This document shows, piece after piece, positions 3,001-38,860 of a stretch of 64,000 nucleotides of DNA. Within the stretch, counting starts at the first letter, position 1, and every line of letters starts with the position of its first letter. Both the position numbers and the translations under genes were made by a program. The DNA is from Rebecca billardiae RCC1528 (Eukaryota > Protista > Haptophyta): positions 186,001-250,000 of the forward strand of contig OZ251246.1 of the NCBI GenBank assembly GCA_965240325.2, given 5' to 3'. The notes under the pieces are model-generated. The model saw only the letters and a program-made list of their open reading frames with translations. It did no database searches and was not told where the DNA came from.

Positions 3001-6000
3001 GACGGCGGAGGCGACGGAGGCGGCAACGGCGTCTCCAGCGGTGGCGGAGGGCTCGGCGGGGGCGAAGGCGGCGGCGATGGCGGCAGCAAAGGCGGCGGCG
3101 AGGGCGGCGGGCTCGGCGGCGAAGACGGTGGCGGCACCGGCGGCGGCGGTGACGGCGGCGGCGACGGCGGAGGCGAAGGCGGCGGCGAAGGCGGCGGCGC
3201 CGGCGGCGACGGAGGCGGGAATGGATCCGTGCGAGGCGGCGGCGGCGGCTGTGGTGGCGGGCTCGGCGGCGGAGATGGCGGCGGGGACGGCGGCGGGGAC
3301 GGTGGCGGCGTTGGAGGCGGCGGGCTCGGCGGCGGACGCGGTGGCGGTGAAGGCGGCGGGCTCGGCGGTGGCGACGGCGGCGGCGACGGCGGCGGTGTAG
3401 GCACAGCAGCCGGCGGCGGCGGGCTCGGTGGTGGGCTTGGCGGCGGGCTTGGTGGCGGGCTGGGCGGCGGCGACGGTGGCGGCGCGGGCGGCGCCTCAGG
3501 CGGCGGCGAAGGTGGCGGCGACGGCGGAGGCGACGGAGGCGGCAACGGCGTCTCAAGTGGTGGCGGAGGGCTCGGCGGGGGCGAAGGCGGCGGCGATGGC
3601 GGCGGCAAAGGCGGCGGCGAGGGCGGCGGGCTCGGCGGTGGAGACGGTGGCGGCACCGGCGGCGGCGGGGACGGCGGCGGCGACGGCGGAGGCGAAGGCG
3701 GCGGCGAGGGCGGCGGCGCCGGCGGCGACGGAGGCGGGAACGGATCCGTGCGCGGCGGCGGCGGCGGCTGTGGTGGCGGGCTCGGCGGCGGAGACGGCGG
3801 CGGGGACGGAGGCGGGGACGGTGGCGGCGCCGGAGGCGGCGGACTCGGCGGTGGACGCGGTGGCGGTGAAGGCGGCGGGCTCGGCGGTGGCGACGGCGGC
3901 GGCGACGGCGGCGGTGTTGGCACAGCAGCCGGCGGCGGCGGGCTCGGCGGTGGGCTTGGCGGCGGGCTTGGTGGCGGGCTGGGCGGCGGCGACGGTGGCG
4001 GCGCGGGCGGCGCCTCAGGCGGCGGCGAAGGTGGCGGCGACGGCGGAGGCGACGGAGGCGGCAACGGCGTCTCCAGCGGTGGCGGAGGGCTCGGCGGGGG
4101 CGAAGGCGGCGGCGATGGCGGCAGCAAAGGCGGCGGCGAGGGCGGCGGGCTCGGCGGCGGAGACGGTGGCGGCACCGGCGGCGGCGGTGACGGCGGCGGC
4201 GACGGCGGAGGCGAAGGCGGCGGCGAAGGCGGCGGCGCCGGCGGCGACGGAGGCGGGAACGGATCCGTGCGAGGCGGCGGCGGCGGCTGTGGTGGCGGGC
4301 TCGGCGGCGGAGATGGCGGCGGGGACGGCGGCGGGGACGGTGGCGGCGTTGGAGGCGGCGGGCTCGGCGGCGGACGCGGTGGCGGTGAAGGCGGCGGGCT
4401 CGGCGGTGGCGACGGCGGCGGCGACGGCGGCGGTGTAGGCACAGCAGCCGGCGGCGGCGGGCTCGGTGGTGGGCTGGGCGGCGGGCTTGGTGGTGGGCTG
4501 GGCGGCGGCGACGGTGGCGGCACGGGCGGCGCCTCAGGCGGCGGCGAAGGTGGCGGCGACGGCGGAGGCGACGGAGGCGGCAACGGCGTCTCCAGCGGTG
4601 GCGGAGGGCTCGGCGGGGGCGACGGCGGCGGCGATGGCGGCGGCGACGGCGGCGGCGAGGGCGGCGGCGAGGGTGGTGGCGACGGTGGCGGCACCGGCGG
4701 CGGCGGCGACGGCGGCTGCGACGGCGGAGGCGAAGGCGGCGGCGAGGGCGGCGGCGCCGGCGGCGACGGAGGCGGGAATGGATCCGTGCGCGGCGGCGGC
4801 GGCGGCTGTGGTGGCGGGCTCGGCGGCGGAGACGGCGGCGGGGACGGCGGCGGGGACGGTGGCGGCGTTGGAGGCGGCGGGCTCGGCGGCGGACGCGGTG
4901 GCGGTGAAGGCGGCGGGCTCGGCGGTGGCGACGGCGGCGGCGACGGCGGCGGTGTAGGCACAGCAGCCGGCGGCGGCGGGCTCGGTGGTGGGCTGGGCGG
5001 CGGGCTCGGTGGTGGGCTGGGCGGCGGGCTTGGTGGTGGGCTGGGCGGCGGCGACGGTGGCGGCGCGGGCGGCGCCTCAGGCGGCGGCGAAGGTGGCGGC
5101 GACGGCGGAGGCGACGGAGGCGGCAACGGCGTCTCCAGCGGTGGCGGAGGGCTCGGCGGGGGCGACGGCGGCGGCGATGGCGGCGGCGACGGCGGCGGCG
5201 AGGGCGGCGGCGAGGGTGGTGGCGACGGTGGCGGCACCGGCGGCGGCGGCGACGGCGGCGGCGACGGCGGAGGCGAAGGCGGCGGCGAGGGCGGCGGCGC
5301 CGGCGGCGACGGAGGCGGGAATGGATCCGTGCGCGGCGGCGGCGGCGGCTGTGGTGGCGGGCTCGGCGGCGGAGACGGCGGCGGGGACGGCGGCGGGGAC
5401 GGTGGCGGCGTTGGAGGCGGCGGGCTCGGCGGCGGACGCGGTGGCGGTGAAGGCGGCGGGCTCGGCGGTGGCGACGGCGGCGGCGACGGCGGCGGTGTAG
5501 GCACAGCAGCCGGCGGCGGCGGGCTCGGTGGTGGGCTGGGCGGCGGGCTCGGTGGTGGGCTGGGCGTCGGGCTTGGTGGTGGGCTGGGCGGCGGCGACGG
5601 TGGCGGCGCGGGCGGCGCCTCAGGCGGCGGCGAAGGTGGCGGCGACGGCGGAGGCGACGGAGGCGGCAACGGCGTCTCCAGCGGTGGCGGAGGGCTCGGC
5701 GGGGGCGACGGCGGCGGCGATGGCGGCGGCACAGGCGGCGGCGACGGCGGCGGCGAAGGCGGTGGCGACGGTGGCGGCACCGGCGGCGGCGGCGACGGCG
5801 GCGGAGACGGCGGAGGCGAAGGCGGCGGCGAGGGCGGCGGTGCCGGCGGCGACGGAGGCGGGAACGGATCCGTGCGCGGCGGCGGCGGCGGCTGTGGTGG
5901 CGGGCTCGGCGGCGGAGATGGCGGCGGGGACGGCGGCGGGGACGGTGGCGGCGTTGGAGGCGGCGGGCTCGGCGGCGGACGCGGTGGCGGTGAAGGCGGC

Positions 6001-9000
6001 GGGCTCGGCGGTGGCGACGGCGGCGGCGACGGCGGCGGTGTAGGCACAGCAGCCGGCGGCGGCGGGCTCGGTGGTGGGCTTGGCGGCGGGCTTGGTGGCG
6101 GGCTGGGCGGCGGCGACGGTGGCGGCGCGGGCGGCGCCTCAGGCGGCGGCGAAGGTGGCGGCGACGGCGGAGGCGACGGAGGCGGCAACGGCGTCTCCAG
6201 CGGTGGCGGAGGGCTCGGCGGGGGCGACGGCGGCGGCGATGGCGGCGGCGACGGCGGCGGCGACGGCGGCGGCGAAGGCGGTGGCGACGGTGGCGGCACC
6301 GGCGGCGGCGGCGACGGCGGCGGAGACGGCGGAGGCGAAGGCGGCGGTGAGGGCGGCGGTGCCGGCGGCGACGGAGGCGGGAATGGATCCGTGCGCGGCG
6401 GCGGCGGCGGCTGTGGTGGCGGGCTCGGCGGCGGAGACGGCGGCGGGGACGGCGGCGGGGACGGTGGCGGCGTTGGAGGCGGCGGGCTCGGCGGCGGACG
6501 CGGTGGCGGTGAAGGCGGCGGGCTCGGCGGTGGCGACGGCGGCGGCGACGGCGGCGGTGTAGGCACAGCAGCCGGCGGCGGCGGGCTCGGTGGTGGGCTT
6601 GGCGGCGGGCTTGGTGGCGGGCTGGGCGGCGGCGACGGTGGCGGCGCGGGCGGCGCCTCAGGCGGCGGCGAAGGTGGCGGCGACGGCGGAGGCGACGGAG
6701 GCGGCAACGGCGTCTCCAGCGGTGGCGGAGGGCTCGGCGGGGGCGACGGCGGCGGCGATGGCGGCGGCGACGGCGGCGGCGACGGCGGCGGCGAAGGCGG
6801 TGGCGACGGTGGCGGCACCGGCGGCGGCGGCGACGGCGGCGGAGACGGCGGAGGCGAAGGCGGCGGTGAGGGCGGCGGTGCCGGCGGCGACGGAGGCGGG
6901 AATGGATCCGTGCGCGGCGGCGGCGGCGGCTGTGGTGGCGGGCTCGGCGGCGGAGACGGCGGCGGGGACGGCGGCGGGGACGGTGGCGGCGTTGGAGGCG
7001 GCGGGCTCGGCGGCGGACGCGGTGGCGGTGAAGGCGGCGGGCTCGGCGGTGGCGACGGCGGCGGCGACGGCGGCGGTGTAGGCACAGCAGCCGGCGGCGG
7101 CGGGCTCGGTGGTGGGCTGGGCGGCGGGCTTGGTGGTGGGCTGGGCGGCGGCGACGGTGGCGGCACGGGCGGCGCCTCAGGCGGCGGCGAAGGTGGCGGC
7201 GACGGCGGAGGCGACGGAGGCGGCAACGGCGTCTCCAGCGGTGGCGGAGGGCTCGGCGGGGGCGACGGCGGCGGCGATGGCGGCGGCGACGGCGGCGGCG
7301 AGGGCGGCGGCGAGGGTGGTGGCGACGGTGGCGGCACCGGCAGCGGCGGCGACGGCGGCGGCGACGGCGGAGGCGAAGGCGGCGGCGAGGGCGGCGGCGC
7401 CGGCGGCGACGGAGGCGGGAATGGATCCGTGCGCGGCGGCGGCGGCGGCTGTGGTGGCGGGCTCGGCGGCGGAGACGGCGGCGGGGACGGCGGCGGGGAC
7501 GGTGGCGGCGTTGGAGGCGGCGGGCTCGGCGGCGGACGCGGTGGCGGTGAAGGCGGCGGGCTCGGCGGTGGCGACGGCGGCGGCGACGGCGGCGGTGTAG
7601 GCACAGCAGCCGGCGGCGGCGGGCTCGGTGGTGGGCTGGGCGGCGGGCTCGGTGGTGGGCTGGGCGGCGGGCTTGGTGGTGGGCTGGGCGGCGGCGACGG
7701 TGGCGGCGCGGGCGGCGCCTCAGGCGGCGGCGAAGGTGGCGGCGACGGCGGAGGCGACGGAGGCGGCAACGGCGTCTCCAGCGGTGGCGGAGGGCTCGGC
7801 GGGGGCGACGGCGGCGGCGATGGCGGCGGCGACGGCGGCGGCGACGGCGGCGGCGAAGGCGGTGGCGACGGTGGCGGCACCGGCGGCGGCGGCGACGGCG
7901 GCGGAGACGGCGGAGGCGAAGGCGGCGGCGAGGGCGGCGGTGCCGGCGGCGACGGAGGCGGGAACGGATCCGTGCGCGGCGGCGGCGGCGGCTGTGGTGG
8001 CGGGCTCGGCGGCGGAGATGGCGGCGGGGACGGCGGCGGGGACGGTGGCGGCGTTGGAGGCGGCGGGCTCGGCGGCGGACGCGGTGGCGGTGAAGGCGGC
8101 GGGCTCGGCGGTGGCGACGGCGGCGGCGATGGCGGCGGTGTAGGCACAGCAGCCGGCGGCGGCGGGCTCGGTGGTGGGCTGGGCGGCGGGCTTGGTGGCG
8201 GGCTGGGCGGCGGCGACGGTGGCGGCGCGGGCGGCGCCTCAGGCGGCGGCGAAGGTGGCGGCGACGGCGGAGGCGACGGAGGCGGCAACGGCGTCTCCAG
8301 CGGTGGCGGCGGGCTCGGCGGGGGCGACGGCGGCGGCGATGGCGGCGGCAAAGGCGGCGGCGAGGGCGGCGGCGACGGCGGCGGCGACGGTGGCGGCACC
8401 GGCGGCGGCGGCGACGGCGGCGGCGACGGCGGAGGCGAAGGCGGCGGGCTAGGTGGCGGTGCCGGCGGCGACGGAGGCGGGAATGGATCCGTGCGCGGCG
8501 GCGGCGGCGGCTGTGGTGGCGGGCTCGGCGGCGGAGACGGCGGCGGGGACGGCGGCGGGGACGGTGGCGGCGTTGGAGGCGGCGGGCTCGGCGGCGGACG
8601 CGGTGGCGGTGAAGGCGGCGGGCTCGGCGGTGGCGACGGCGGCGGCGACGGCGGCGGTGTAGGCACAGCAGCCGGCGGCGGCGGGCTCGGTGGTGGGCTG
8701 GGCGGCGGGCTTGGTGGTGGGCTGGGCGGAGGCGACGGTGGCGGCGCGGGCGGCGCCTCAGGCGGCGGCGAAGGTGGCGGCGACGGCGGAGGCGACGGAG
8801 GCGGCAACGGCGTCTCCAGCGGTGGCGGAGGGCTCGGCGGGGGCGACGGCGGCGGCGATGGCGGCGGCGACGGCGGCGGCGACGGCGGCGGCGAAGGCGG
8901 TGGCGACGGTGGCGGCACAAGCGGCGGCGACGACGGCGGCGGAGACGGCGGAGGCGAAGGCGGCGGTGAGGGCGGCGGTGCCGGCGGCGACGGAGGCGGG

Positions 9001-12000
9001 AATGGATCCGTGCGCGGCGGCGGCGGCGGCTGTGGTGGCGGGCTCGGCGGCGGAGATGGCGGCGGGGACGGCGGCGGGGACGGTGGCGGCGTTGGAGGCG
9101 GCGGGCTTGGCGGCGGACGCGGTGGCGGTGAAGGCGGCGGGCTCGGCGGTGGCGACGGCGGCGACGACGGCGGCTGTGTAGGCACAGCAGCCGGCGGCGG
9201 CGGGCTCGGTGGTGGGCTGGGCGGCGGGCTTGGTGGTGGGCTGGGCGGCGGCGACGGTGGCGGCGCGGGCGGCGCCTCAGGCGGCGGCGAAGGTGGCGGC
9301 GACGGCGGAGGCGACGGAGGCGGCAACGGCGTCTCCAGCGGTGGCGGCGGGCTCGGCGGGGGCGACGGCGGCGGCGATGGCGGCGGCAAAGGCGGCGGCG
9401 AGGGCGGCGGCGAAGGCGGTGGCGACGGTGGCGGCACCGGCGGCGGCGGCGACGGCGGCGGAGACGGCGGCGGCGAAGGCGGCGGGCTAGGTGGCGGCGC
9501 CGGCGGCGACGGAGGCGGGAACGGATCCGTGCGCGGCGGCGGCGGCGGCTGTGGTGGCGGGCTCGGCGGCGGAGACGGCGGCGGGGACGGCGGCGGGGAC
9601 GGTGGCGGCGTTGGAGGCGGCGGGCTCGGCGGTGGACGCGGTGGCGGAGATGGCGGAGGGCTCGGCGGTGGCGACGGCGGCGGCGACGGCGGCGGTGTTG
9701 GCACAGCAGCCGGCGGCGGCGGGCTCGGTGGTGGGCTGGGCGGCGGGCTTGGTGGTGGGCTGGGCGGCGGCGACGGTGGCGGCGCGGGCGGCACCTCAGG
9801 CGGCGGCGAAGGTGGCGGCGACGGCGGAGGCGACGGAGGCGGCAACGGCGTCTCCAGCGGTGGCGGCGGGCTCGGCGGGGGCGACGGCGGCAGCGATGGC
9901 GGCGGCGACGGCGGCGGCGACGGCGGCGGCGAAGGCGGTGGCGAGGGCGGCGGCGAGGGTGGTGGCGACGGTGGCGGCACCGGCGGCGGCGGCGACGGCG
10001 GTGGGGACGGCGGAGGCGAAGGCGGCGGGCTAGGTGGCGGTGCCGGCGGCGACGGAGGCGGGAACGGATCCGTGCGCGGCGGCGGCGGCGGCTGTGGTGG
10101 CGGGCTCGGCGGCGGAGATGGCGGCGGGGACGGCGGCGGGGACGGTGGCGGCGTTGGAGGCGGCGGGCTCGGCGGCGGACGCGGTGGCGGTGAAGGCGGC
10201 GGGCTCGGCGGTGGCGACGGCGGCGGCGACGGCGGCGGTGTAGGCACAGCAGCCGGCGGCGGCGGGCTCGGTGGTGGGCTGGGCGGCGGGCTTGGTGGTG
10301 GGCTGGGCGGCGGCGACGGTGGCGGCGCGGGCGGCGCCTCAGGCGGCGGCAAAGGTGGCGGCGACGGCGGAGGCGACGGAGGCGGCAACGGCGTCTCCAG
10401 CGGTGGCGGCGGGCTCGGCGGGGGCGACGGCGGCGGCGATGGCGGCGGCGACGGCGGCGGCGACGGCGGCGGCGAGGGTGGTGGCGACGGTGGCGGCACC
10501 GGCGGCGGCGGCGACGGCGGTGGGGACGGCGGAGGCGAAGGCGGCGGGCTAGGTGGCGGTGCCGGCGGCGACGGAGGCGGGAACGGATCCGTGCGCGGCG
10601 GCGGCGGCGGCTGTGGTGGCGGGCTCGGCGGCGGAGATGGCGGCGGGGACGGCGGCGGGGACGGTGGCGGCGTTGGAGGCGGCGGGCTCGGCGGCGGACG
10701 CGGTGGCGGTGAAGGCGGCGGGCTCGGCGGTGGCGACGGCGGCGGCGACGGCGGCGGTGTAGGCACAGCAGCCGGCGGCGGCGGGCTCGGTGGTGGGCTG
10801 GGCGGCGGGCTCGGCGGCGGGCTGGGCGGCGGCGACGGTGGTGGCGCGGGCGGCGCCTCGGGCGGCGTCGAAGGTGGCGGCGACGGCGGAGGCGACGGAG
10901 GCGGCAACGGCGTCTCCAGCGGTGGCGGAGGGCTCGGCGGGGGCGACGGCGGCGGCGATGGCGGCGGCGACGGCGGCGGCGACGGCGGCGGCGAGGGTGG
11001 TGGCGACGGTGGCGGCACCGGCGGCGGCGGCGACGGCGGTGGGGACGGCGGAGGCGAAGGCGGCGGGCTAGGTGGCGGTGCCGGCGGCGACGGAGGCGGG
11101 AATGGATCCTTGCGAGGCGGCGGCGGCGGCTGTGGTGGCGGGCTCGGCGGCGGAGATGGCGGCGGGGACGGCGGCGGGGACGGTGGCGGCGTTGGAGGCG
11201 GCGGGCTCGGCGGCGGACGCGGTGGCGGTGAAGGCGGCGGGCTCGGCGGTGGCGACGGCGGCGGCGACGGCGGCGGTGTAGGCACAGCAGCCGGCGGCGG
11301 CGGGCTCGGTGGTGGGCTGGGCGGCGGGCTGGGCGGCGGGCTGGGCGGCGGCGACGGTGGTGGCGCAGGCGGAAGCGCAGGCGGCGGCGAAGGTGGCGGC
11401 GACGGCGGAGGCGACGGAGGCGGCAACGGCGTCTCCAGCGGTGGCGGAGGGCTCGGCGGGGGCGACGGCGGCGGCGATGGCGGCGGCAAAGGCGGCGGCG
11501 AGGGCGGTGGCGAGGGTGGTGGCGACGGTGGCGGCACCGGCGGCGGCGGCGACGGCGGTGGGGACGGCGGAGGCGAAGGCGGCGGGCTAGGTGGCGGTGC
11601 CGGCGGCGACGGAGGCGGGAATGGATCCGTGCGCGGCGGCGGCGGCGGCTGTGGTGGCGGGCTCGGCGGCGGAGATGGCGGCGGGGACGGCGGCGGGGAC
11701 GGTGGCGGCGTTGGAGGCGGCGGGCTCGGCGGCGGACGCGGTGGCGGTGAAGGCGGCGGGCTCGGCGGTGGCGACGGCGGCGGCGACGGCGGCGGTGTAG
11801 GCACAGCAGCCGGCGGCGGCGGGCTCGGTGGTGGGCTGGGCGGCGGGCTTGGTGGTGGGCTGGGCGGCGGCGACGGTGGCGGCGCGGGTGGCGCCTCAGG
11901 CGGCGGCGAAGGTGGCGGCGACGGCGGAGGCGACGGAGGCGGCAACGGCGTCTCCAGCGGTGGCGGAGGACTCGGCGGGGGCGACGGCGGCGGCGATGGC

Positions 12001-14200
12001 GGCGGCGACGGCGGCGGTGTAGGCACAGCAGCCGGCGGCGGCGGGCTCGGTGGTGGGCTGGGCGGCGGGCTCGGCGGCGGGCTGGGCGGCGGCGACGGTG
12101 GTGGCGCAGGCGGAAGCGCAGGCGGCGGCGAAGGTGGCGGCGACGGCGGAGGCGACGGAGGCGGAAACGGCGTCTCCAGCGGTGGCGGAGGGCTCGGCGG
12201 GGGCGACGGCGGCGGCGATGGCGGCGGCAAAGGCGGCGGCGTGGGCGGCGGCGAGGGTGGTGGCGACGGTGGCGGCACCGGCGGCGGCGGCGACGGCGGT
12301 GGGGACGGCGGAGGCGAAGGCGGCGGCGAGGGCGGCGGCGCCGGCGGCGACGGAGGCGGGAATGGATCCGTGCGCGGCGGCGGCGGCGGCTGTGGTGGCG
12401 GGCTCGGCGGCGGAGACGGCGGCGGGGACGGCGGCGGGGACGGTGGCGGCGTTGGAGGCGGCGGGCTCGGCGGCGGACGCGGTGGCGGTGAAGGCGGCGG
12501 GCTCGGCGGTGGCGACGGCGGCGGCGACGGCGGCGGTGTTGGCACAGCAGCCGGCGGCGGCGGGCTCGGCGGTGGGCTGGGCGGCGGGCTTGGTGGTGGG
12601 CTGGGCGGCGGCGACGGTGGCGGCGCGGGCGGCGCCTCAGGCGGCGGCGAAGGTGGCGGCGACGGCGGAGGCGACGGAGGCGGCAACGGCGTCTCCAGCG
12701 GTGGCGGAGGGCTCGGCGGGGGCGACGGCGGCGGCGATGGCGGCGGCGACGGCGGCGGCGAAGGCGGCGGCGAAGGCGGTGGCGACGGTGGCGGCACCGG
12801 CGGCGGCGGCGACGGCGGCGGCGACGGCGGAGGCGAAGGCGGCGGGCTAGGTGGCGGCGCCGGCGGCGACGGAGGCGGGAACGGATCCGCGCGCGGCGGC
12901 GGCGGCGGCTGTGGTGGCGGGCTCGGCGGCGGAGATGGCGGCGGGGACGGCGGCGGGGACGGTGGCGGCGTTGGAGGCGGCGGGCTCGGCGGCGGACGCG
13001 GTGGCGGCGAAGGCGGCGGGCTCGGCGGTGGCGACGGCGGCGGCGATGGCGGCGGTGTAGGCACGGCAGCCGGCGGCGGCGGGCTCGGTGGTGGGCTGGG
13101 AGGCGGGCTTGGTGGCGGACTGGGCGGCGGCGAAGGTGGCGGCGCGGGCGGAAGCGCAGGCGGCGGCGAAGGTGGCGGCGACGGCGGAGGCGACGGCGGC
13201 GGCAGCGGCGTATCCAGCGGAGGTGGCGGGCTCGGCGGGGGCGACGGCGGCGGGGACGGCGGCGGCGCAGGTGGCGGCGTCGGAGGCGGGCTCGGCGGAG
13301 GCGACGGTGGCGGAACCGGCGGCGGCGGCGAAGGCGGTGGCGACGGCGGAGGCGACGGCGGCGGGCTCGGTGGCGGCGCCGGCGGCGACGGAGGCGGGAA
13401 GGGCGCTAGGCGCGGAGGCGGCGGCGGCTGTGGTGGCGGGCTCGGCGGCGGAGATGGCGGTGGTGACGGCGGCGGTGAAGGTGGCGGCGTCGGAGGCGGC
13501 GGGCTCGGCGGCGGCGACGGCGGTGGTGACGGCGGTGGTGTTGGCACAGCCACTGGCGGTGGCGGGCTCGGCGGCGGACTTGGTGGCGGGCTCGGTGGCG
13601 GGCTCGGCGGCGGCGCCGGCGGCGCGCTGGGCGGCGGCGACGGTGGCGGGGACGGTGGCGGCGACGGTGGCGGCGAGGGAGGCGGGCTGGGAACGCCTGA
13701 AATTGGTGGTGGGCTTGGCGGTGGCAGTGGCGGTGGTGCCGGTGGCAGGGCCGGCGGCGGCGAGGGAGGCGGGGATGGCGGGGGAGTTGGCAAGGGAGGC
13801 GGGCTTGGCGGGGGCGACGGCGGCGGGCTCGGCGGTGGCGATGGCGGCTGCGACGGTGGTGGCGAAGGCGGAGGGGCAGGCGGCGGGGACGGAGGCGGCG
13901 TGGGTCCCGGCGGCGGGGACGGTGGCGGGGTGGGCGGTGGGCTGGGCGGCGGAGCCGGGGCAGGGGGAGGCGATGGCGGCGGCGATGGCGGCGGCAATGG
14001 CGGTGGCTGCGGCGGTGGCGAAGGGGGCGGCACCGGAGGCAACGGTGGCGGCGATGGAGGCGGCGATGGCGGTGGGGATGGTGGTGGCGACGGCGGTGGC
14101 ACAGGTGGCGGGGCGGGCGGCGCCGCCGGAGGCGGCGGACTCGGCGGTGGCGTCGGAGGCGGCGGCGACGGCGGCGGCAGCGGTGGCGGTGGCAGCGGAG
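1..14200 (-). repeat. Coding tandem array 1: 519-bp (173-aa) unit, ~24 copies plus degenerate flanks
   Basis: Marker GGATCC (within the RTDPF codons) at 628, 1147, 1666, 2185, 2704, 3223, 3742, 4261, 4780, 5323 ... 12364, 12883. Spacing is 519 or 543, once 741. The unit is SPPP runs punctuated by QPPPPPRTDPF, PAAVPTP and PLETPLP. Confidence 0.95.
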
Positions 14201-17200
14201 GCCCAATCACCACTGTCGAGAGCAGCGGCGTGAACGTGTACAGGAAGTCGGCGTAGAACTGCGCGGACGAGCCGAGGAACGGGAACTTGCGGTCGTCCGC
14301 GCCGTTGCCCAGCGCGTCCGTCGTCTCGATCATCACAGCAACGCCCAAAGACCCGCTGAGCGCCTGCGGCCACCCGCCGCTCGGGTACACGCCCACGCTG
14401 AACACGCCGTTGGCGTACTCGCCGCGCCCCACCCAGTAGCCTTCGGTCGACGTGCCGTTGTCCGTGCCGTTCACGTACACTGGCGTGTATGATGCAGTGG
14501 CCGCGCCGATCTCGAAGAAGACGCTCGTCTGGCTGTCGTCGGCGACGGTGTTGTCGTCCTTCGTCACGACGACGGACACCACGAGCGGGTCGCTCGTGCC
14601 GACGCCAACGGCCCCCGACGGGATGCTGTAGCTCGTCAGGAAGCGGTACTTGCCCGCGACTGCGCGCAGCAGGTACTGCACATCCTGCGCGCCCGTGCTG
14701 TTATCCAGCGTCGGGTCGAGCGCGGACGCGCACGTCGTCAGCCCGGACACGCCGATGACGAACTGCGAGAGCACGCGCACGTCGAATGAGGTCAGGGCGC
14801 AGTCACCGTTCACATCGCCGGCGACGCCAGCCGAGCAGCCCGAGCACTCCGCCAGCCGCCGCGCGCGCGCCGCCCGGCTCGACTCGGTCGGCACAAACAG
14901 GGGCGGCACGTACTCAGCGGCCAGCGCGAGCGCGCGCCGCCGGCTGACGGTCGTCGTGAGGCCGCCTGCGCCCGCGAAGAGTTCGGCGTTCTGCACGCGC
15001 GTCTCGGTCGCGCCCTGCACGGTCACGAGCTCGACGATGCTTCCCGTCAGCGACGTGCTCGCCGAGGACAGCACGTCGAATGTGACGGAGCCGATCGAGG
15101 CGGCAGTGCCGCTGGTGATCTGCGATGCCGTGTTGCCCACAAACCTGACCTCGTTCAGCGGATCGTTGATCGTGCACTCGGCCCACGAGAGCGTGCTGCA
15201 CGACGTCGCGACCAGGACAGCGCTGTCGATGGCCAGCTCGATCTGGAAGTTGACCAAGTACTCCGAGCCGCCACCCGTGTTCACGCGCACGGGCACCGTC
15301 AGCGAGTTGCCAGACTGCTGGAACTGCAGTCCGCTCGCTGAGCCGAGGTCCACGTCGTACGTGCCAGGCTGCAGGTTCGCCGTCACGTCGAGGGCGTCGG
15401 CCACCGCGCCGGCATCGCGCGACGTCGCGGTGATCGAGTTCGCCGCGTCACGGCTGTTGCCGGCGATCGTCACCACGCCGTTCGGGTCGACGCCGAGCAC
15501 GGCCGCGTCGTCGCTCTCAAAGCTGAGCACCTCTGACACGCTCACGTACCCCAGCGACATCAGGTTGGTGTACTGCACGCCGTCCTCGAGCGTGACGAGC
15601 GCGCTCAGCGTGCTCGACGTGCCGTTGGTGGCCAGCAGCGACGCGCCGGACGTCAAGCCGCCCAGGCCCAGCGTCAGCGCCGTCACCTTCACCGCCGTCG
15701 CGTCGACGTAGACGGTGGCTGACGCTGTGAGCGTGCCCCACGTCGCGTTGATGAGCGCAACGCCCGCGCCCACGCCGATGACAGTGCTGCCCGACGTGGT
15801 CGCGACGAGCGTGTTGTTCGACGCCAGCACCATCTCGGCGGCCAGCAGCGTGGGCGAGACCACCGTGCCGTCGCTTAGCGTGGCCGATGGCGTCGTGGCC
15901 GTGCGCTGGAACGTGGTGGACGCGCCGATCAGCCCGAGCGTGTCGTCGTCGAGCGTGATCTCGAATGACGCGCCAGCAGCCGTCACGACCGGCACCTCGA
16001 CGAAGCCATTCAGGAGGTACGAGTCGACGAAGACGGTCACGTTGAGCGCAGTGCACGTTGCACCACTCGCCATCGTCACCTCGTTCACGCCGTCGAATGT
16101 GGCGCACGACGACGGCACCGAGAGCGTGATGTTGGTGCGCGGGTCGGTGGTGAAGTCCACCTGCGACTCGTCTTCAAACGTGACCGTGATCGTGACGGTG
16201 AGCGACGTGGGCAGCGACGTCGGCGGCTCGGCAGCAGGGTCGCCCGGCACGGTCACCTTGGTGGCCGATGTGCTCACGCCCACGCTCACCGCGTTCGGCA
16301 ACTCTAGATCCACGCGCGCGCGGCCCGTCGCGAGCACGGCGCTGCACGAATCGATCCAGCTCGCGTCGAGGAGCAGGCCCTCCTGCGACGTGGCAAACGT
16401 TGCCACGGTAGCCGTCCACGGCGACGATGCGTCGCCCGGCGCACCGACGGTGAGACTCGACGTGCGGCTCGTCAGCGTGACCTCAGTCGACGGCACGAGC
16501 TCGTACGAGCCGTCGCCGAGGTACGCGTACGTGTACACGCTCACCGTCTGCCCTTCGGCCGTGAGCGTCTGCCCGAGAGCAGCCGACGCGTCGAAGCCGC
16601 TCGTCGCGCCCACACTCAGCGTCGACGGCGGCGAGTCGACGAACGCGATCGAGTTGAACGCCACGGGCCGGAGCGATGCGACAAGGCGCTCCACGTCCGT
16701 CGACACCACGATCGTCGACGAGATCGACGGGCTCGAGCCGGATGCGCTGATCGCAGCCGAGCCGACGCCCACGCCCGTCACCGTCACCACGCCGGTCGTG
16801 CCGGACGTGGAGATGCTCGCGACGCCGGCGTCGCCCGAGGCGAGCGTCGCCTCGCGCGTCACGTCCACGTTGCTCACCGTGCTCAGGCCCGTGCCGCCAA
16901 ACGACGCGACGAGGCTGGCCGTCGTCGACTGGAACGCCTGCGTGCCGCACTGGCCGGGCTGCGACGCGCCCTTGATGGCGAAGAGCGTACCGTACCCGAA
17001 GCGGATCTCTGCGGACAGCGGGTGCCACACGCGCAGCGGCACGCTCGCGACCACCGCGCCGCTCGAGACGCGCGTCACGTTGACGAGAGTCGTCGCGGCG
17101 CCCGACGTGCTCGAGCTGCTCGCCACCACCGTGCACGGCGACCCTGAGCTGATGCCGAGCACGCTCGAGTCGAGCGCGAGGCACGAGTAGCCGCTCGACT

Positions 17201-20200
17201 GAGTGGCAGACGCAGTGGCGGCGCGGCTGTACAGCTCGAGCACGCTGAGCGCGGTGGTCACGTCGGTGCCGGAGAGCGGCGCGGTGTTGACCAGCTCGCC
17301 CGAGGCGACGTATGCGAGCCAGCCCTGCACCGCCACGGTCTCGACCACGAGCGTGCCGCTCGCTGACGCGCCGTCGTCCGCGTCGGCGACCACGCCCGCC
17401 TGCTCGCTCACGTACACCTGCGTCGCGTCGTTCACGTACTGCTCGATCTCGACCGAGATGGCGCCGGCGTAGCTGCCAGCGGAGGCACCACCGGCCACGC
17501 TCATCGTCAGCGTGATCAGCTCCACGGCCGTACCGGTCACCTGCGCGTTGGTCGTGCCACCGGTGAGCCCCGTCGCGATGATCGACACGAGGCCGGCCGC
17601 GTTGTCGTTCACCTCCGGTGAGTTGTACGTGCTCGCGACCGACGTGCTGGCGACGCTGAGCACGCTCGAGTTGTACGCAATGTTGATCTGCCAGGTGATC
17701 AGCGCGACGCCACCCGTGTGCGCATACATCACCAGGTCAAAGCTGTCGCCCGCGAACACGGGCGACTGCGCCATCTGGCCCAGCAGGCCGACCGATGGGA
17801 GTGTGTACGCGGTCGGGCTCTCGGCGAGCGTGATCGCGCCCGCACGAGAGCACGAGTCCACGGTGCCGCCGCCGTAGTTGAAGTCGACGAGCACGTCGAC
17901 GCTGCCCGCTGCGGCCGTGCTGAACCAGCCCGAGCTCACGGTGGCCGAGCACTCGCCCACGCCCGTCGTCGCGCTCGGCGAGCCGCACGAGAAGCTCTGG
18001 TCGGAGCCGCCCACCAGCGACAGCGTCAGGCTCACGCTCAGACCAGTGGTGAGCACGGACGAGCGGTGCGCCGCATCGCGAAGCTGGTACGCGACGCGCA
18101 CGCCCGCGCGGTCCGCGTACGCCGTCGGCGTGCGCACCGCGCAGTCCACGCTCGCCGCCTGCTCGGCGGTCACGCTGTAGCTGCTCGCCACGCCGAGATC
18201 GATGCCGTGCGACGCGGCGCGCACCGTGCCGGACGCGCCCACAGACGCGCCCGCCAAGAAGCCCACCGTCAAGTTGTGCCGGTTGCCGGCGCTGCTGACC
18301 GTGCCGTGCACAACCGCGCCCGGGCTGCTGCTCGTCGTGTACAGCGTGATCTGAGCGTCCGAGACCAGCGCATCCGCGCCGAACACGAACGGCGGAAGCG
18401 GCGGCGACGGCGGCGACGGCGGCGGGAATGGCAGCGTGCGCGGCGGCGGCGGGCTTGGCGGCGACGGCGGCGGGAGCGGCGGCGGTGGGCTAGGTGGCGG
18501 CGAAGGCGGTGGGCTCGGCGGCGGCGATGGGGGCGGAGAGGGCGGCTGCGGGCTAGGCGGCGGGCTGGGCGGTGGGCTGGGCGGTGGCGCAGGTGGCACT
18601 GACGGTGGTGGGGATGGCGGTGGGGATGGTGGCAAGGACGGAGGAGGCGACGGCGGCGGGCGAGGTGGCGGCGGTGAAGGAGGCGGGGACGGCGGTGGGG
18701 AAGGTGGTGGGGATGGCGGCGGCTGCGGCGGTGGCGATGGAGGTGGCGACGGGGGTGTGTTTGGCGGAGGGCTGGGCGGAGGGGAAGGCGGTGGCAGAGG
18801 CGGCGGCGGCGAAGGCGGCGGGCTCGGCGGCAGAGACGGCGGCGGTGCGGGTGGAGGAGACGGCGGCGGCGATGGGGGAGGGCTCGGGGGCGGGCTGGGA
18901 GGAGGCGAGGGCGGAGGTGACGGCGGCGGGGTCGGTACAGTCACCGGCGGAGGCGGGCTCGGTGGCGGACTCGGTGGCGGGCTTGGCGGCGGGTTCGGAG
19001 GTGGGCTCGGCGGCAGGCTCGGCGGCGGGCTCGGTGGCGGCAAGGGCGGCTGTGCAGGAGGCGGTGACGGCGGCGGCGAAGGAGGGGGCGACGGCGTGGC
19101 CGCAGCTGGCGGCGGGCTGGGGGGAGGCGATGGAGGCGGGCTCGGTGGTGGGCTCGGTGGCGGCGACGGTGGTGGGCCCGGTGGCAACGACGGCGGTGGC
19201 GAAGGCGGTGGTGACGGTGGTGGCGATGGCGGCGGCACTGGTGGCGGCGGCGACGGAGGGGGCGACGGTGGCGGTGACGGTGGCGGAGATGGCGGCGGGG
19301 AGGGGGGCGACGGCGGTGGAAACGGCTCAGCACGCGGCGGTGGCGGCGGCTGCGGCGGTGGGCTCGGCGGTGGTGACGGAGGCGGGCTTGGAGGCGGTGA
19401 CGGCGGTGGCAAAGGTGGCGGTGGCGAAGGCGGAGGGCTCGGAGGAGGGCTGGGCGGCGGGCTAGGCGGCGGTGACGGTGGCGGTGAAGGCGGCGGCAAT
19501 GGGATAGGCGCGGGCGGAGGGCTCGGAGGCGGGCTGGGCGGTGGGCTCGGCGGCGGGCTCGGTGGCGAGCTCGGAGGTGGAGAAGGCGGTGGCGATGGTG
19601 GCGGTGATGGCGGCGGCGAAGGTGGCGGGCTCGGTGGGGGCGAGGGCGGCGGAGACGGTGGCGGTGTCGGCGTGCCCGCTGCCGGCGGTGGGCTCGGTGG
19701 CGGCCTCGGCGGAGGGCTCGGTGGTGGTGACGGGGGCTGCACAGGCGGTGTTGCGGGCGGCGGCGATGGCGGCGGTGACGGCGGCGGTGACGGTGGCGGC
19801 ACCGGCGGCGGTGGCGACGGTGGCGGCGAAGGCGGAGGGCTCGGTGGCGGCGAGGGTGGTGGCGACGGCGGTGGCGACGGCGGTGGTGATGGTGGTGGCG
19901 AAGGTGGCGGCGCCGGCGGCGACGGAGGCGGGAACGGATCTGTGCGAGGTGGCGGCGGCGGCGCCGGCGGCGGGCTTGGCGGCGGCGACGGAGGTGGGCT
20001 GGGCGGTGGCGACGGCGGTGGTATCGGCGGCGGGGGCGACGGCGGTGGACTCGGCGGAGGGCTCGGCGGAGGGCTCGGTGGAAGCGACGGCGGCGGCGAC
20101 GGTGGCGGCGCAGGCGCGCCAACAGGCGGCGGGCTCGGCGGTGGAATCGGTGGCGGGCTCGGCGGTGGGCTCGGCGGTGGGCTCGGCGGTGGGCTCGGCG

Positions 20201-23200
20201 GTGGGCTCGGCGGCGGCGACGGCGGCGGCGACGGCGGCGGCGACGGCGGTGGCGACGGAGGCGGTGATGGAGGCGGCGTCGGCGCACCTGCTGCCGGCGG
20301 TGGGCTCGGTGGCGGAGACGGCGGCGGGCTCGGTGGCGGGCTCGGCGGAGGGCTCGGTGGTGGGCTCGGCGGTGGGCTGGGCGGCGAAGCCGGCGGCGGC
20401 GATGGTGGCGGTGATGGTGGCGGCGACGGTGGCGGCGCCGGCGGCGGTGGCGACGGTGGCGGCGATGGCGGAGGGCTCGGTGGCGGCGAGGGCGGTGGCG
20501 ACGGCGGCGGCGACGGCGGCGGCAACGGCGGCGGCGAGGGCGGCGGAGCCGGCGGCGACGGAGGCGGGAACGGATCTGTGCGAGGTGGCGGTGGCGGCTG
20601 CGGCGGTGGGCTTGGCGGGGGCGACGGAGGTGGGCTCGACGGCGGCGACGGCGGAGGGCTGGGAGGCGGTGGCGACGGCGGCGGGCTCGGCGGAGGGCTC
20701 GGGGGAGGCAATGGCGGAGGCAACGGCGGCGGCGATGGCGGAGGCGCCGGCACGCCAACAGGCGGCGGGCTCGGCGGCGGACTCGGCGGTGGGCTCGGCG
20801 GTGGGCTCGGCGGTGGGCTCGGCGGTGGGCTCGGCGGCGGCGACGGCGGCGGCGACGGCGGCCGCGACGGCGGTGGCGACGGAGGCGGTGAAGGCGGCGG
20901 CGTCGGCGCACCTGCTGCCGGCGGTGGGCTCGGTGGCGGAGACGGCGGCGGGCTCGGCGGCGGGCTCGGCGGAGGGCTCGGTGGTGGGCTCGGTGGTGGG
21001 CTGGGCGGCGAAGCCGGCGGCGGCGATGGTGGCGGTGATGGCGGCGGCGACGGTGGCGGCGCCGGCGGCGGTGGCGACGGTGGCGGCGATGGCGGAGGGC
21101 TCGGTGGCGGCGAGGGCGGTGGCGACGGCGGCGGCGACGGCGGCGGCGACGGCGGCGGCGAGGGCGGCGGAGCCGGCGGCGACGGAGGCGGGAACGGATC
21201 TGTGCGAGGTGGCGGTGGCGGCTGCGGCGGTGGGCTTGGCGGAGGCGACGGAGGTGGGCTCGGCGGCGGCAACGGCGGAGGGCTGGGAGGCGGTGGCGAC
21301 GGCGGCGGGCTCGGCGGAGGGCTCGGGGGAGGCAATGGCGGAGGCAACGGCGGCGGCGATGGCGGAGGCGCCGGCACGCCAACAGGCGGCGGGCTCGGCG
21401 GCGGACTCGGCGGTGGGCTCGGCGGTGGGCTCGGCGGTGGGCTCGGCGGTGGGCTCGGCGGCGGCGACGGCGGCGGCGACGGCGGCGGCGACGGCGGTGG
21501 CGACGGAGGCGGTGATGGAGGCGGCGTCGGCGCACCTGCTGCCGGCGGTGGGCTCGGTGGCGGAGACGGCGGCGGGCTCGGCGGCGGGCTCGGCGGAGGG
21601 CTCGGTGGTGGGCTCGGTGGTGGGCTGGGCGGCGAAGCCGGCGGCGGCGATGGTGGCGGTGATGGCGGCGGCGACGGTGGCGGCGCCGGCGGCGGTGGCG
21701 ACGGTGGCGGCGATGGCGGAGGGCTCGGTGGCGGCGAGGGCGGTGGCGACGGCGGCGGCGACGGCGGCGGCGACGGCGGCGGCGAGGGCGGCGGAGCCGG
21801 CGGCGACGGAGGCGGGAACGGATCTGTGCGAGGTGGCGGTGGCGGCTGCGGCGGTGGGCTTGGCGGAGGCGACGGAGGTGGGCTCGGCGGTGGCGACGGC
21901 GGAGGGCTGGGAGGCGGTGGCGACGGCGGCGGGCTCGGCGGAGGGCTCGGGGGAGGCAATGGCGGAGGCAACGGCGGCGGCGATGGCGGAGGCGCCGGCA
22001 CGCCAACAGGTGGCGGGCTCGGCGGCGGACTCGGCGGTGGGCTCGGCGGTGGGCTCGGCGGTGGGCTCGGCGGTGGGCTCGGCGGTGGGCGCGGCGGTGG
22101 CGACGGCGGCGGCGACGGCGGCGGCGACGGCGGTGGCGACGGAGGCGGCGATGGAGGCGGCGTCGGCGCACCTGCTGCCGGCGGTGGGCTCGGTGGCGGA
22201 GACGGCGGCGGGCTCGGTGGCGGGCTCGGCGGAGGGCTCGGTGGTGGGCTCGGTGGTGGGCTGGGCGGCGAAGCCGGCGGCGGCGACGGTGGCGGTGATG
22301 GCGGCGGCGACGGTGGCGGCGCCGGCGGCGGTGGCGACGGTGGCGGCGATGGCGGAGGGCTCGGTGGCGGCGAGGGCGGTGGCGACGGCGGCGGCGACGG
22401 CGGTGGCGACGGCGGCGGCGAGGGCGGCGGAGCCGGCGGCGACGGAGGCGGGAACGGATCTGTGCGAGGTGGCGGTGGCGGCTGCGGCGGTGGGCTTGGC
22501 GGAGGCGACGGAGGTGGGCTCGGCGGCGGCGACGGCGGAGGGCTGGGAGGCGGTGGCGACGGCGGCGGGCTCGGCGGAGGGCTCGGGGGAGGCAATGGCG
22601 GAGGCAACGGCGGCGGCGATGGCGGAGGCGCCGGCACGCCAACAGGTGGCGGGCTCGGCGGCGGACTCGGCGGTGGGCTCGGCGGTGGGCTCGGCGGTGG
22701 GCTCGGCGGTGGGCTCGGCGGTGGGCTCGGCGGCGGCGACGGCGGCGGCGACGGCGGCGGCGACGGCGGTGGCGACGGAGGCGGTGATGGAGGCGGCGTC
22801 GGCGCACCTGCTGCCGGCGGTGGGCTCGGTGGCGGAGACGGCGGCGGGCTCGGTGGCGGGCTCGGCGGAGGGCTCGGTGGTGGGCTCGGTGGTGGGCTGG
22901 GCGGCGAAGCCGGCGGCGGCGACGGTGGCGGTGATGGCGGCGGCGACGGTGGCGGCGCCGGCGGCGGTGGCGACGGTGGCGGCGATGGCGGAGGGCTCGG
23001 TGGCGGCGAGGGCGGTGGCGACGGCGGCGGCGACGGCGGTGGCGACGGCGGCGGCGAGGGCGGCGGAGCCGGCGGCGACGGAGGCGGGAACGGATCTGTG
23101 CGAGGTGGCGGTGGCGGCTGCGGCGGAGGGCTTGGCGGAGGCGACGGAGGTGGGCTCGGCGGCGGCGACGGCGGAGGGCTGGGAGGCGGTGGCGACGGCG

Positions 23201-26200
23201 GCGGGCTCGGCGGAGGGCTCGGCGGAGGCAATGGCGGAGGCAACGGCGGCGGCGATGGCGGAGGCGCCGGCACGCCAACAGGCGGCGGGCTCGGCGGCGG
23301 GCTCGGCGGTGGGCTCGGCGGTGGGCTCGGCGGCGGCGACGGCGGCGGCGACGGCGGCGGCGACGGCGGTGGCGACGGAGGCGGTGATGGAGGCGGCGTC
23401 GGCGCACCTGCTGCCGGCGGAGGGCTCGGTGGCGGAGACGGCGGCGGGCTCGGTGGCGGGCTCGGCGGAGGGCTCGGTGGTGGGCTCGGTGGTGGGCTGG
23501 GCGGCGAAGCCGGCGGCGGCGACGGTGGCGGTGATGGCGGCGGCGACGGTGGCGGCGCCGGCGGCGGTGGCGACGGTGGCGGCGATGGCGGAGGGCTCGG
23601 TGGCGGCGAGGGCGGTGGCGACGGCGGCGGCGACGGCGGTGGCGACGGCGGCGGCGAGGGCGGCGGAGCCGGCGGCGACGGAGGCGGGAACGGATCTGTG
23701 CGAGGTGGCGGTGGCGGCTGCGGCGGTGGGCTTGGCGGAGGCGACGGAGGTGGGCTCGGCGGCGGCGACGGCGGAGGGCTGGGAGGCGGTGGCGACGGCG
23801 GCGGGCTCGGCGGAGGGCTCGGGGGAGGCAATGGCGGAGGCAACGGCGGCGGCGATGGCGGAGGCGCCGGCACGCCAACAGGTGGCGGGCTCGGCGGCGG
23901 GCTCGGCGGTGGGCTCGGCGGTGGGCTCGGCGGTGGGCTCGGCGGTGGGCTCGGCGGTGGGCTCGGCGGCGGCGACGGCGGCGGCGACGGCGGCGGCGAC
24001 GGCGGTGGCGACGGAGGCGGTGATGGAGGCGGCGTCGGCGCACCTGCTGCCGGCGGTGGGCTCGGTGGCGGAGACGGCGGCGGGCTCGGTGGCGGGCTCG
24101 GCGGAGGGCTCGGTGGTGGGCTCGGTGGTGGGCTGGGCGGCGAAGCCGGCGGCGGCGACGGTGGCGGTGATGGCGGCGGCGACGGTGGCGGCGCCGGCGG
24201 CGGTGGCGACGGTGGCGGCGATGGCGGAGGGCTCGGTGGCGGCGAGGGCGGTGGCGACGGCGGCGGCGAGGGCGGTGGCGACGGCGGCGGCGAGGGCGGC
24301 GGAGCCGGCGGCGACGGAGGCGGGAACGGATCTGTGCGAGGTGGCGGTGGCGGCTGCGGCGGTGGGCTTGGCGGAGGCGACGGGGGTGGGCTCGGCGGCG
24401 GCGACGGCGGAGGGCTGGGAGGCGGTGGCGACGGCGGCGGGCTCGGCGGAGGGCTCGGGGGAGGCAATGGCGGAGGCAACGGCGGCGGCGATGGCGGAGG
24501 CGCCGGCACGCCAACAGGCGGCGGGCTCGGCGGCGGACTCGGCGGTGGGCTCGGCGGTGGGCTCGGCGGTGGGCTCGGCGGTGGGCTCGGCGGCGGCGAC
24601 GGCGGCGGCGACGGCGGCGGCGACGGCGGTGGCGACGGAGGCGGTGATGGAGGCGGCGTCGGCGCACCTGCTGCCGGCGGTGGGCTCGGTGGCGGAGATG
24701 GCGGCGGGCTCGGTGGCGAGCTCGGCGGAGGGCTCGGTGGTGGGCTCGGTGGTGGGCTGGGCGGCGAAGCCGGCGGCGGCGATGGTGGCGGTGATGGCGG
24801 CGGCGACGGTGGCGGCGCCGGCGGCGGTGGCGACGGTGGCGGCGATGGCGGAGGGCTCGGTGGCGGCGAGGGCGGTGGCGACGGCGGCGGCGACGGCGGT
24901 GGCGACGGCGGCGGCGAGGGCGGCGGAGCCGGCGGCGACGGAGGCGGGAACGGATCTGTGCGAGGTGGCGGTGGCGGCTGCGGCGGTGGGCTTGGCGGAG
25001 GCGACGGAGGCGGGCTTGGCGGCGGCGACGGCGGAGGGCTGGGAGGCGGTGGCGACGGCGGAGGGCTCGGCGGAGGGCTCGGGGGAGGCAATGGCGGAGG
25101 CAACGGCGGCGGCGATGGCGGAGGCGCCGGCACGCCAACAGGCGGCGGGCTCGGCGGCGGACTCGGCGGTGGGCTCGGCGGTGGGCTCGGCGGCGGGCTC
25201 GGCGGCGGCGACGGCGGCGGCGACGGTGGCGGCGACGGCGGTGGCGACGGAGGCGGTGATGGAGGCGGCGTCGGCGCACCTGCTGCCGGCGGTGGGCTCG
25301 GTGGCGGAGACGGCGGCGGGCTCGGTGGCGGGCTCGGCGGAGGGCTCGGTGGTGGTGACGGGGGTGGGCTGGGCGGCGAAGCCGGCGGCGGCGACGGTGG
25401 CGGTGATGGCGGCGGCGACGGTGGCGGCGCCGGCGGCGGTGGCGACGGTGGCGGCGATGGCGGAGGGCTCGGTGGCGGCGAGGGCGGTGGCGACGGCGGC
25501 GGCGACGGCGGTGGCGACGGCGGCGGCGAGGGCGGCGGAGCCGGCGGCGAGGGAGGCGGGAACGGATCTGTGCGAGGTGGCGGTGGCGGCTGCGGCGGTG
25601 GGCTTGGCGGAGGCGACGGAGGCGGGCTTGGCGGCGGCGACGGCGGAGGGCTGGGAGGCGGTGGCGACGGCGGCGGGCTCGGCGGAGGGCTCGGGGGAGG
25701 CAATGGCGGAGGCAACGGCGGCGGTGATGGCGGAGGCGCCGGCACGCCAACAGGCGGCGGGCTCGGCGGCGGGCTCGGCGGCGGACTCGGCGGTGGGCTC
25801 GGCGGTGGGCTCGGCGGCGGGCTCGGCGGCGGCGACGGCGGCGGCGACGGTGGCGGCGACGGCGGTGGCGACGGAGGCGGTGATGGAGGCGGCGTCGGCG
25901 CACCTGCTGCCGGCGGTGGGCTCGGTGGCGGAGACGGCGGCGGGCTCGGTGGCGGGCTCGGCGGAGGGCTCGGTGGTGGTGACGGGGGTGGGCTGGGCGG
26001 CGAAGCCGGCGGCGGCGACGGTGGCGGTGATGGCGGCGGCGACGGTGGCGGCGCCGGCGGCGGTGGCGACGGTGGCGGCGATGGCGGAGGGCTCGGTGGC
26101 GGCGAGGGCGGTGGCGACGGCGGCGGCGACGGCGGTGGCGACGGCGGCGGCGAGGGCGGCGGCGCCGGCGGCGACGGAGGCGGGAACGGATCTGTGCGAG

Positions 26201-38774: not shown

Positions 38775-38777
<3 letters not shown>

Positions 38778-38837
<60 letters not shown>

Positions 38838-38860
38838 AGAGATCTGATATATATATATAT
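38778..38860. repeat. Compound (CA)n(GA)n...(TA)n microsatellite
   Basis: Directly visible dinucleotide runs. Confidence 0.95.

Follow-up and report, generated by a model that had tools for sequence, protein, structure and literature searches.

The question raised by this locus is whether a cohesin and a dockerin that lie side by side in one eukaryotic polypeptide, joined by a linker with paired basic residues, form an extracellular coupling that is cut by a protease and held together by the two domains themselves. The locus lies in a 64,000-nucleotide stretch of DNA from the haptophyte Rebecca billardiae RCC1528 (assembly GCA_965240325.2, contig OZ251246.1, positions 186,001 to 250,000 of the forward strand), which is referred to here as the window, and it encodes part of a giant protein on the minus strand. 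An earlier note on this DNA had proposed a releasable, Ca2+-dependent coupling of this kind. We are almost certain that a genuine and conserved cassette of cohesin, dibasic loop and dockerin closes a TMEM132-like module at this locus. To the whole mechanism, in which a convertase nicks the loop and the joint is then held non-covalently by the cohesin-dockerin pair, we assign a probability of roughly 45%.

The cassette and the domain that follows it are made up as follows, in the order of the protein.

14940..15365, minus strand: cohesin 2
14934..14945, minus strand: basic motif 1 (SRRR), which opens a helix predicted at 14913-14942 (model residues 150-159)
14835..14909, minus strand: exposed loop of low predicted confidence, ending in CSGC
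14856..14867, minus strand: basic motif 2 (RARR, then LAEC), the candidate convertase site
14640..14834, minus strand: type I-like dockerin with two EF-hand-like Ca loops
14202..14639, minus strand: C-terminal MG/Ig-like beta-sandwich (model residues 249-396), predicted to pack with the cassette

Residue numbers refer to the last 396 residues of the module, 32 copies of which (mean identity 33%) were aligned as input for structure prediction. The residues of the linker, RRRAL through RARRL at 14942-14853, lie where the earlier note had placed them, and the domains that it had called cohesin-like and dockerin-like are both borne out, the former by predicted fold and the latter by fold and family profile.

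The dockerin carries two repeats, each consisting of a 12-residue EF-hand-like Ca loop and a helix, as expected of this family. Both loops are intact, the first reading DVNGDCALTSFD at 14781-14816 and the second DPTLDNSTGAQD at 14682-14717; each has D at positions 1, 5 and 12 and N or T at position 3, and the helices are found at 201-212 and 234-244. Among the 32 sequences, G191, D192, D203 and D236 are invariant and D196 is conserved in at least 90%. These conserved ligand residues suggest a dockerin of the Ca2+-dependent type. The copy in the window matched Pfam Dockerin_1 (PF00404) over positions 1-54 of 57 with an E value of 0.0046, its 17.6 bits falling below the cut-off of 22.9. Resemblance to dockerins was found at the level of the family profile: a profile built from 31 dockerin segments was compared with all Protein Data Bank (PDB) sequences, and the best 30 rows were all dockerins (E 7.8e-8), with both repeats covered. 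When homologous dockerin segments were scanned singly, 10 of 31 matched Dockerin_1 (best E 4.9e-7) and none matched any other family. Model residues 188-248 were superimposed by VIA on 2CCL_B, the dockerin of C. thermocellum Xyn10B, with a Z score of 10.0 and a root-mean-square deviation (rmsd) of 1.6 A over 61 of 62 residues at 31% identity; the rmsd to 4FL4_A was also 1.6 A. Additional cysteines are present as a CxxC ahead of the dockerin and as a single Cys within Ca loop 1.

Cohesin 2 is recognized by its predicted fold, the nine-stranded jelly-roll beta-sandwich of cohesins. A Foldseek search of the PDB returned cohesins on top (best 4UMS, E 4.8e-7), and the VIA search, which is independent of Foldseek, aligned model residues 9-150 with the solved cohesins 2VO8, 4UMS, 5NRK and 1OHZ_A at Z scores of 10-11.9 and rmsd values of 2.5-3.1 A over approximately 128 residues. 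Pfam Cohesin (PF00963), with its cut-off of 24.1 bits, did not match cohesin 2 of the window, and a second cohesin-like domain upstream, cohesin 1, reached 19.9 bits, so that neither copy is assigned to the family by its own sequence. Homologous cohesin-2 segments scanned singly matched Pfam Cohesin in 14 of 31 cases, with a best E value of 1.3e-8, and matched no other family. The beta-sandwich that follows the dockerin is most similar by VIA to 4U48, 6RPT_E and 1F02 (Z about 8). A profile of this sandwich also matched Ruminococcus ScaE cohesins weakly (E 0.01); a third, strongly diverged cohesin-like domain is conceivable here, although the fold search favors an MG/Ig-like assignment.

AlphaFold2 was used to predict the structure of cohesin, loop, dockerin and sandwich together (model 1) and of cohesin, loop and dockerin alone, 250 residues in length (model 2). 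The mean predicted local distance difference test score (pLDDT) was 89.2 in model 1 and 90.0 in model 2, and the predicted template modelling score (pTM) was 0.89 and 0.88, respectively. Cohesin 2 scored above 90 and the dockerin, in model 2, scored 90-97; the loop scored 42-65 in model 1 and 53-81 in model 2. Only residues 167-180 of model 1 fell below 50, and these include RARR (pLDDT about 42-53). Because such pTM values would be unexpected if a quarter of the residues were randomly placed with respect to the others, a direct intramolecular contact between cohesin 2 and the dockerin is predicted, and on the strength of these models we think it likely that the dockerin docks on the adjacent cohesin in cis. 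Since AlphaFold2 confidently packs the two domains against each other, the default state is probably a closed intramolecular clasp from which the RARR loop bulges, rather than two free sticky ends. With the dockerin predicted to sit on the neighboring cohesin, the spacer between them, approximately 38 residues in the window copy, would be a surface loop.

The linker was compared among 117 homologous modules, anchored at the end of the cohesin and at the first Ca loop. Its length varies from 31 to 359 amino acids and its sequence is otherwise unconserved, a tolerance that would be expected of a loop bulging from a closed clasp. What is retained is basic residues at its ends. A dibasic pair occurs within 20 amino acids after cohesin 2 in 99 of the 117 modules and within 25 amino acids before the dockerin in 98; both ends carry one in 85 modules, compared with a mean of 19.5 and a maximum of 30 when the linkers were shuffled in 200 trials. 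An unconserved linker, which the earlier note had named beforehand as a ground for abandoning its proposal, is thus not what the homologues display. Two relatives with insertions of 330-360 residues in the linker have kept the basic run at both ends. Arg and Lys make up 16% of linker residues and 5% of residues elsewhere, and outside the linker only 6% of 20-residue windows of the module contain a dibasic pair. In the 1,395-residue module of the window, the sole dibasic sites are SRRR, RARR and one DRKF. R151 of SRRR and R177 of RARR are each conserved in at least 90% of the aligned copies. Because the surrounding loop is unconserved and predicted to be disordered, the basic residues have the signature of a short linear motif rather than of packing.

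The form of the motif differs between lineages. Haptophytes and green algae have R-R-(x)-L as the second motif, which would also fit the consensus of S1P-type subtilases known from plant and animal S1P substrates. Lineages in which the module is joined to cadherin repeats have a textbook R-x-K/R-R or K-R at both ends of the linker, and the second of these motifs keeps a short, constant distance from a Cys. In cadherin-bearing and other lineages, Lys often stands in place of Arg (KR, KK), so the dibasic signal is not an artefact of GC-rich DNA. A reading drawn from the 32-sequence MAFFT alignment, by which R-x-L only and not RxxR was conserved, was rejected as partly the product of an alignment shift; in the 117 anchored linkers the last basic pair lies at a fixed distance from the Cys. 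An export motif of the PEXEL or RxLR type was likewise rejected, since the basic motif lies thousands of residues away from the N-terminus.

The cassette forms the end of a larger globular unit, in which the first cohesin also lies.

14205..18389, minus strand: globular TMEM132-like module of 1,395 amino acids
17397..17804, minus strand: cohesin 1, of the TMEM132 type

The order of the module is an N-terminal region, cohesin 1, Ig-like domains, cohesin 2, the loop, the dockerin and the beta-sandwich. Cohesin 1 (Pfam Cohesin E 8.9e-4) is 29% identical to cohesin 2 (E 4e-5), in keeping with the claim of two cohesins per chain in the earlier note. Directly after cohesin 1, at 17019-17312, Pfam Ig_TMEM132_4th (PF16070) was matched with an E value of 1.1e-9 and 38.6 bits against a cut-off of 27; the presence of this domain behind a cohesin, in the conserved order, marks the module as TMEM132-like, and relatives are named in UniRef as TMEM132 fourth-domain proteins. 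With the last 1,200 residues as query, an exhaustive HMMER search returned 677 cluster representatives at E values up to 1e-3 and 161 at 1e-30, many of which match the entire query and several of which contain two to four copies; hundreds of proteins, at 30-50% identity, can be aligned with the module over its full length. Relatives with a named source are hypothetical proteins from Prymnesium parvum, from Diacronema lutheri (43-50% identity), from Pavlovales sp. CCMP2436, and from Cymbomonas tetramitiformis and Mesostigma viride. By these relatives, the most probable origin of the window is a haptophyte of the pavlovophyte kind. The proteins of Prymnesium and Diacronema have 2-3 modules each, and some relatives join the module to cadherin repeats.

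Two relatives were noted in their own right. A metagenome locus on a 1.36-Mb contig (ENA ERZ26695902) contains, at positions 2437-29829 of the locus, two open reading frames (ORFs) of 1,790 and 4,149 amino acids with cadherin repeats and TMEM132-like modules, the latter with R-x-R/K-R at both ends of the cohesin-dockerin linker; the two cadherin ORFs are followed by small ORFs and then by a Y_phosphatase ORF, a lefftyrin-like layout. Prymnesium parvum KAL1521827.1 contains three near-identical modules of 1,385 amino acids in tandem at residues 579-4733, which differ at 3 of approximately 65 dockerin columns and at 2 linker positions, compared with 12 of 998 upstream columns. These differences are too few for any inference on divergence focused on the dockerin.

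The module is embedded in a giant, mostly repetitive protein.

3..30956, minus strand: body of a giant secreted protein, with the module in frame with flanking Ser-Pro3 arrays
18390..30677, minus strand: upstream Ser-Pro3 rod, (SPPP)n, of approximately 4,100 residues, extensin-like, with a 12-nucleotide unit and a higher-order period of approximately 624 nucleotides
3..14201, minus strand: downstream Ser-Pro3 rod, 4,730 residues or longer, which extends past the window, with a higher-order period of 519 nucleotides at 90% self-identity
30678..33002, minus strand: probable N-terminus of the giant gene, in which three Cys-rich repeats come after a signal-peptide-like segment (32955-33002)

The frame at 3..30956 (codon starts x for which 30956-x is divisible by 3) runs for 10,318 codons without a stop and continues past the start of the window; 61% of its residues are Pro and 17% are Ser. 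The first 118 codons and the block of approximately 1,395 codons at 14205-18389 are its only parts outside the Ser-Pro3 arrays. The guanine-plus-cytosine (GC) content is 83% in the two long arrays and about 70% in the stretch that separates them. In the arrays, at 163-14202 and 18398-30679, all three minus-strand frames are long and open, so that ORF length is uninformative there; in the 4.2-kb module a single frame is open throughout. If each rod forms a polyproline-II helix with a rise of 0.31 nm per residue, it would be about 1.3-1.5 micrometres long. TMEM132 proteins have a single C-terminal transmembrane helix and cytoplasmic WIRS/PP1 motifs; here, the part of the chain that follows the module within the window consists of Ser-Pro3 residues, and the frame continues beyond the window.

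The three tandem Cys-rich repeats are of approximately 150 amino acids each and had no Pfam match; the start codon of the gene was not found. Every repeat contains a short frame change that fits a GT-AG intron, for example one of 164 nucleotides at 30783-30946. The signal-peptide-like segment and the repeats split by GT...AG introns identify the product as that of a secreted eukaryotic gene. From the sequence, the protein may be pictured as beginning with the Cys-rich repeats as lectin-like heads, followed by a rod, the globular module and a second rod. The eukaryotic and non-cellulosomal nature of the system, as the earlier note had it, agrees with these introns, with best relatives in haptophytes and green algae and with the absence of carbohydrate-active enzymes from the protein. 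By Pfam, no enzyme or carbohydrate-binding module (CBM) domain was found in the module, and the one dockerin of the window is on the same chain as its cohesins, so the locus does not qualify as a cellulosome. A look for RNA runs listed none, and the lone sequencing run containing this DNA, of DNA type, yielded five short low-depth contigs, none of which covers the linker. Elsewhere in the window, an assembly gap of 100 N is present at 46803-46902, and the GC content falls locally to 0.585 at 38001-40000, the rest of the window lying between 0.64 and 0.88.

We propose the following mechanism for the cassette. A subtilase-type convertase of the secretory pathway would nick the loop, either a kexin- or furin-like enzyme after RARR and before the Leu, or an S1P-like enzyme at RRL. 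Across the nick, the chain would then be held solely by the non-covalent, Ca2+-stabilized contact of cohesin and dockerin, and each module would become a joint, cut in advance, that connects polyproline rods of micrometre length. The polyprotein would thereby be converted to rod-shaped links, each running from dockerin and sandwich through a rod to a cohesin, joined end to end by non-covalent clasps. Such a joint could carry load, could open on force or on loss of Ca2+ (shedding), or could exchange cis for trans partners (polymerization). The secretory context, with its signal-peptide-like N-terminus, Cys-rich repeats and extensin-like rods, would favor this mechanism, and RARR has the features of a convertase substrate, namely a dibasic and R-x-K/R-R motif in a predicted exposed loop of a putatively secreted protein. 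Whether the loop is cleaved in vivo we consider, judging from these features, to be an even bet.

Several observations weigh against this mechanism. The earlier note had described the linker as holding the furin/kexin consensus; this holds for RARR in the window and, as a dibasic pair before the dockerin, for most of the family, but the strict R-x-K/R-R is present in just 42 of the 117 modules. SRRR lies within a confidently predicted helix (pLDDT 84-93) and, because it starts this helix outside the disordered loop, is a weaker cleavage candidate than RARR. The pTM is an indirect measure of the cis contact, and a contact predicted in this way does not imply use of the canonical dockerin-binding face. 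In prokaryotes, single chains with an adjacent cohesin and dockerin are common, with no nicking known.

These same observations lend themselves to an uncleaved structural clasp, which we regard as rather unlikely but as the most serious of the alternatives. Here the chain would stay covalent, and the dockerin would be a Ca2+-stabilized plug that packs against cohesin 2 and the beta-sandwich and so stiffens the module at its end; the basic residues would serve in salt bridges to the acidic dockerin loops, in binding to anionic polysaccharide or scales, or as a sorting signal. The predicted packed unit with its high pTM, the helical setting of motif 1, the many prokaryotic single-chain proteins without known processing and the fact that most modules lack the strict consensus all fit this alternative. 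It is at odds with the near-invariant Arg and dibasic pairs in a loop that is variable in sequence and length and predicted to be disordered, and with the avoidance of dibasic motifs in the rest of the module.

A second alternative, that of assembly in trans, we judge improbable. With two cohesins to a single dockerin in each module, cohesin 1 is left without a built-in partner; the dockerin might bind this domain, or might bind the cohesin 2 of a different module or molecule, so that rods are cross-linked into a lattice with or without cleavage, and the cis contact in the AlphaFold2 models would be either a short-lived precursor state or an artefact that comes from modelling a single chain. 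Relatives with 2-3 modules in Prymnesium and Diacronema would provide such partners. Counting against this alternative, nearly all dockerin-bearing modules have the dockerin next to cohesin 2 and in the same order, the cis arrangement is predicted at high confidence, and the window has no free dockerin-bearing client. A chance resemblance, by which a generic beta-sandwich and EF-hand-like sequence lie in non-functional GC-rich DNA that is open because stops are rare, might be read from the sub-threshold Pfam scores of this copy and from the open frames of the 83% GC arrays, but it has practically no chance of being correct and is refuted by the homologue search, the dockerin profile and the fold matches specific to cohesins and dockerins, as well as by the single open frame of the 70% GC module.

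The nicked clasp, as we propose it, can be set beside several known systems. Few non-covalent protein links are known to be as strong as cohesin-dockerin pairs, which, to our knowledge, have been studied almost exclusively in bacterial cellulosomes. The type I pair of Acetivibrio (Clostridium) thermocellus (1OHZ, 2CCL) has the same two folds, with cohesin 2 reaching a Z score of 10.4 on 1OHZ_A, and both Ca loops. Unlike that pair, the domains described here are adjacent in one eukaryotic chain with predicted cis pairing, have a conserved dibasic loop between them and extra cysteines, and belong to an adhesion-type module from which enzymes and carbohydrate-binding modules are absent. Non-cellulosomal chains of prokaryotes, such as that of the Archaeoglobus fulgidus cohesin 2XDH and the bacterial and archaeal clusters named "Cohesin/Dockerin type I domain-containing", also have a cohesin followed by a dockerin in one polypeptide, but these are mostly small and lack a TMEM132-like module or polyproline rods; we know of no conserved dibasic loop among them. 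Extensin-type hydroxyproline-rich glycoproteins are secreted and share Ser-Pro3 repeats over thousands of residues, and the arrays of the window fall within the Ser-Pro(3-5) pattern. In contrast to extensins, the arrays here exceed 4,000 residues each, occur in a haptophyte and have an adhesion module within them. Among animal proteins, the Notch S1 furin site, the mucin SEA domain, the adhesion-GPCR GAIN domain and the zona-pellucida furin site are each cut within a folded unit in the secretory pathway, with the two chains held non-covalently, in Notch in a Ca2+-dependent manner; such pre-nicked joints can be pulled open by force or can exchange their cis contacts for trans ones. The logic proposed here is the same, although the folds are unrelated and cleavage of the loop is what we infer.

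According to Sanchez-Pulido and Ponting (2017, PMC6030884), the TMEM132, coherin, lefftyrin and hedgling proteins have an architecture in common, made up of a conserved region, a cohesin and Ig (BIG) domains, and the module of the window has these in the same order. One-cohesin modules of the TMEM132 type are known from across the eukaryotes, and the partner of that cohesin was left open because no dockerin was detectable in vertebrates (PMC6030884). Compared with that module, the present one adds a second cohesin, the dibasic loop, the dockerin and the beta-sandwich, and it is set on Ser-Pro3 rods and probably repeated, whereas the former is anchored by one transmembrane helix. The cadherin-repeat relatives with a downstream tyrosine-phosphatase ORF resemble lefftyrins. 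Full-text literature searches for a dockerin together with coherin, choanoflagellate or haptophyte returned nothing relevant besides PMC6030884. We found no description of a dockerin in a eukaryotic TMEM132-like module, of its pairing with a second cohesin or of the conserved dibasic loop, although an earlier mention is possible; already known are single-chain, non-cellulosomal cohesin and dockerin proteins in prokaryotes and the one-cohesin module in eukaryotes.

The finding places a bona fide dockerin in a wider eukaryotic module, beside a second cohesin, where the question of a partner had been left open (PMC6030884). The loop with its dibasic ends is conserved from haptophytes and green algae to the cadherin-bearing giants. 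The hypothesis of a nicked, Ca2+-dependent clasp can be reduced to a fragment of approximately 250 residues and, if true, would provide a natural eukaryotic and disulfide-bearing cohesin-dockerin pair for protein engineering. As a more speculative and unlikely extension, the ancestral TMEM132/coherin-type module may have been a self-latching device, cut by a convertase between cohesin 2 and the dockerin, whose links remain attached, or join again in trans, in a Ca2+-dependent manner and form a reversible, force-bearing "snap-link" fibre; the TMEM132-type cohesin lineage would then have the dockerin partner that has been missing. If the nicked clasp is real, it would represent a new type of pre-cut extracellular joint beside those of SEA, GAIN and Notch.

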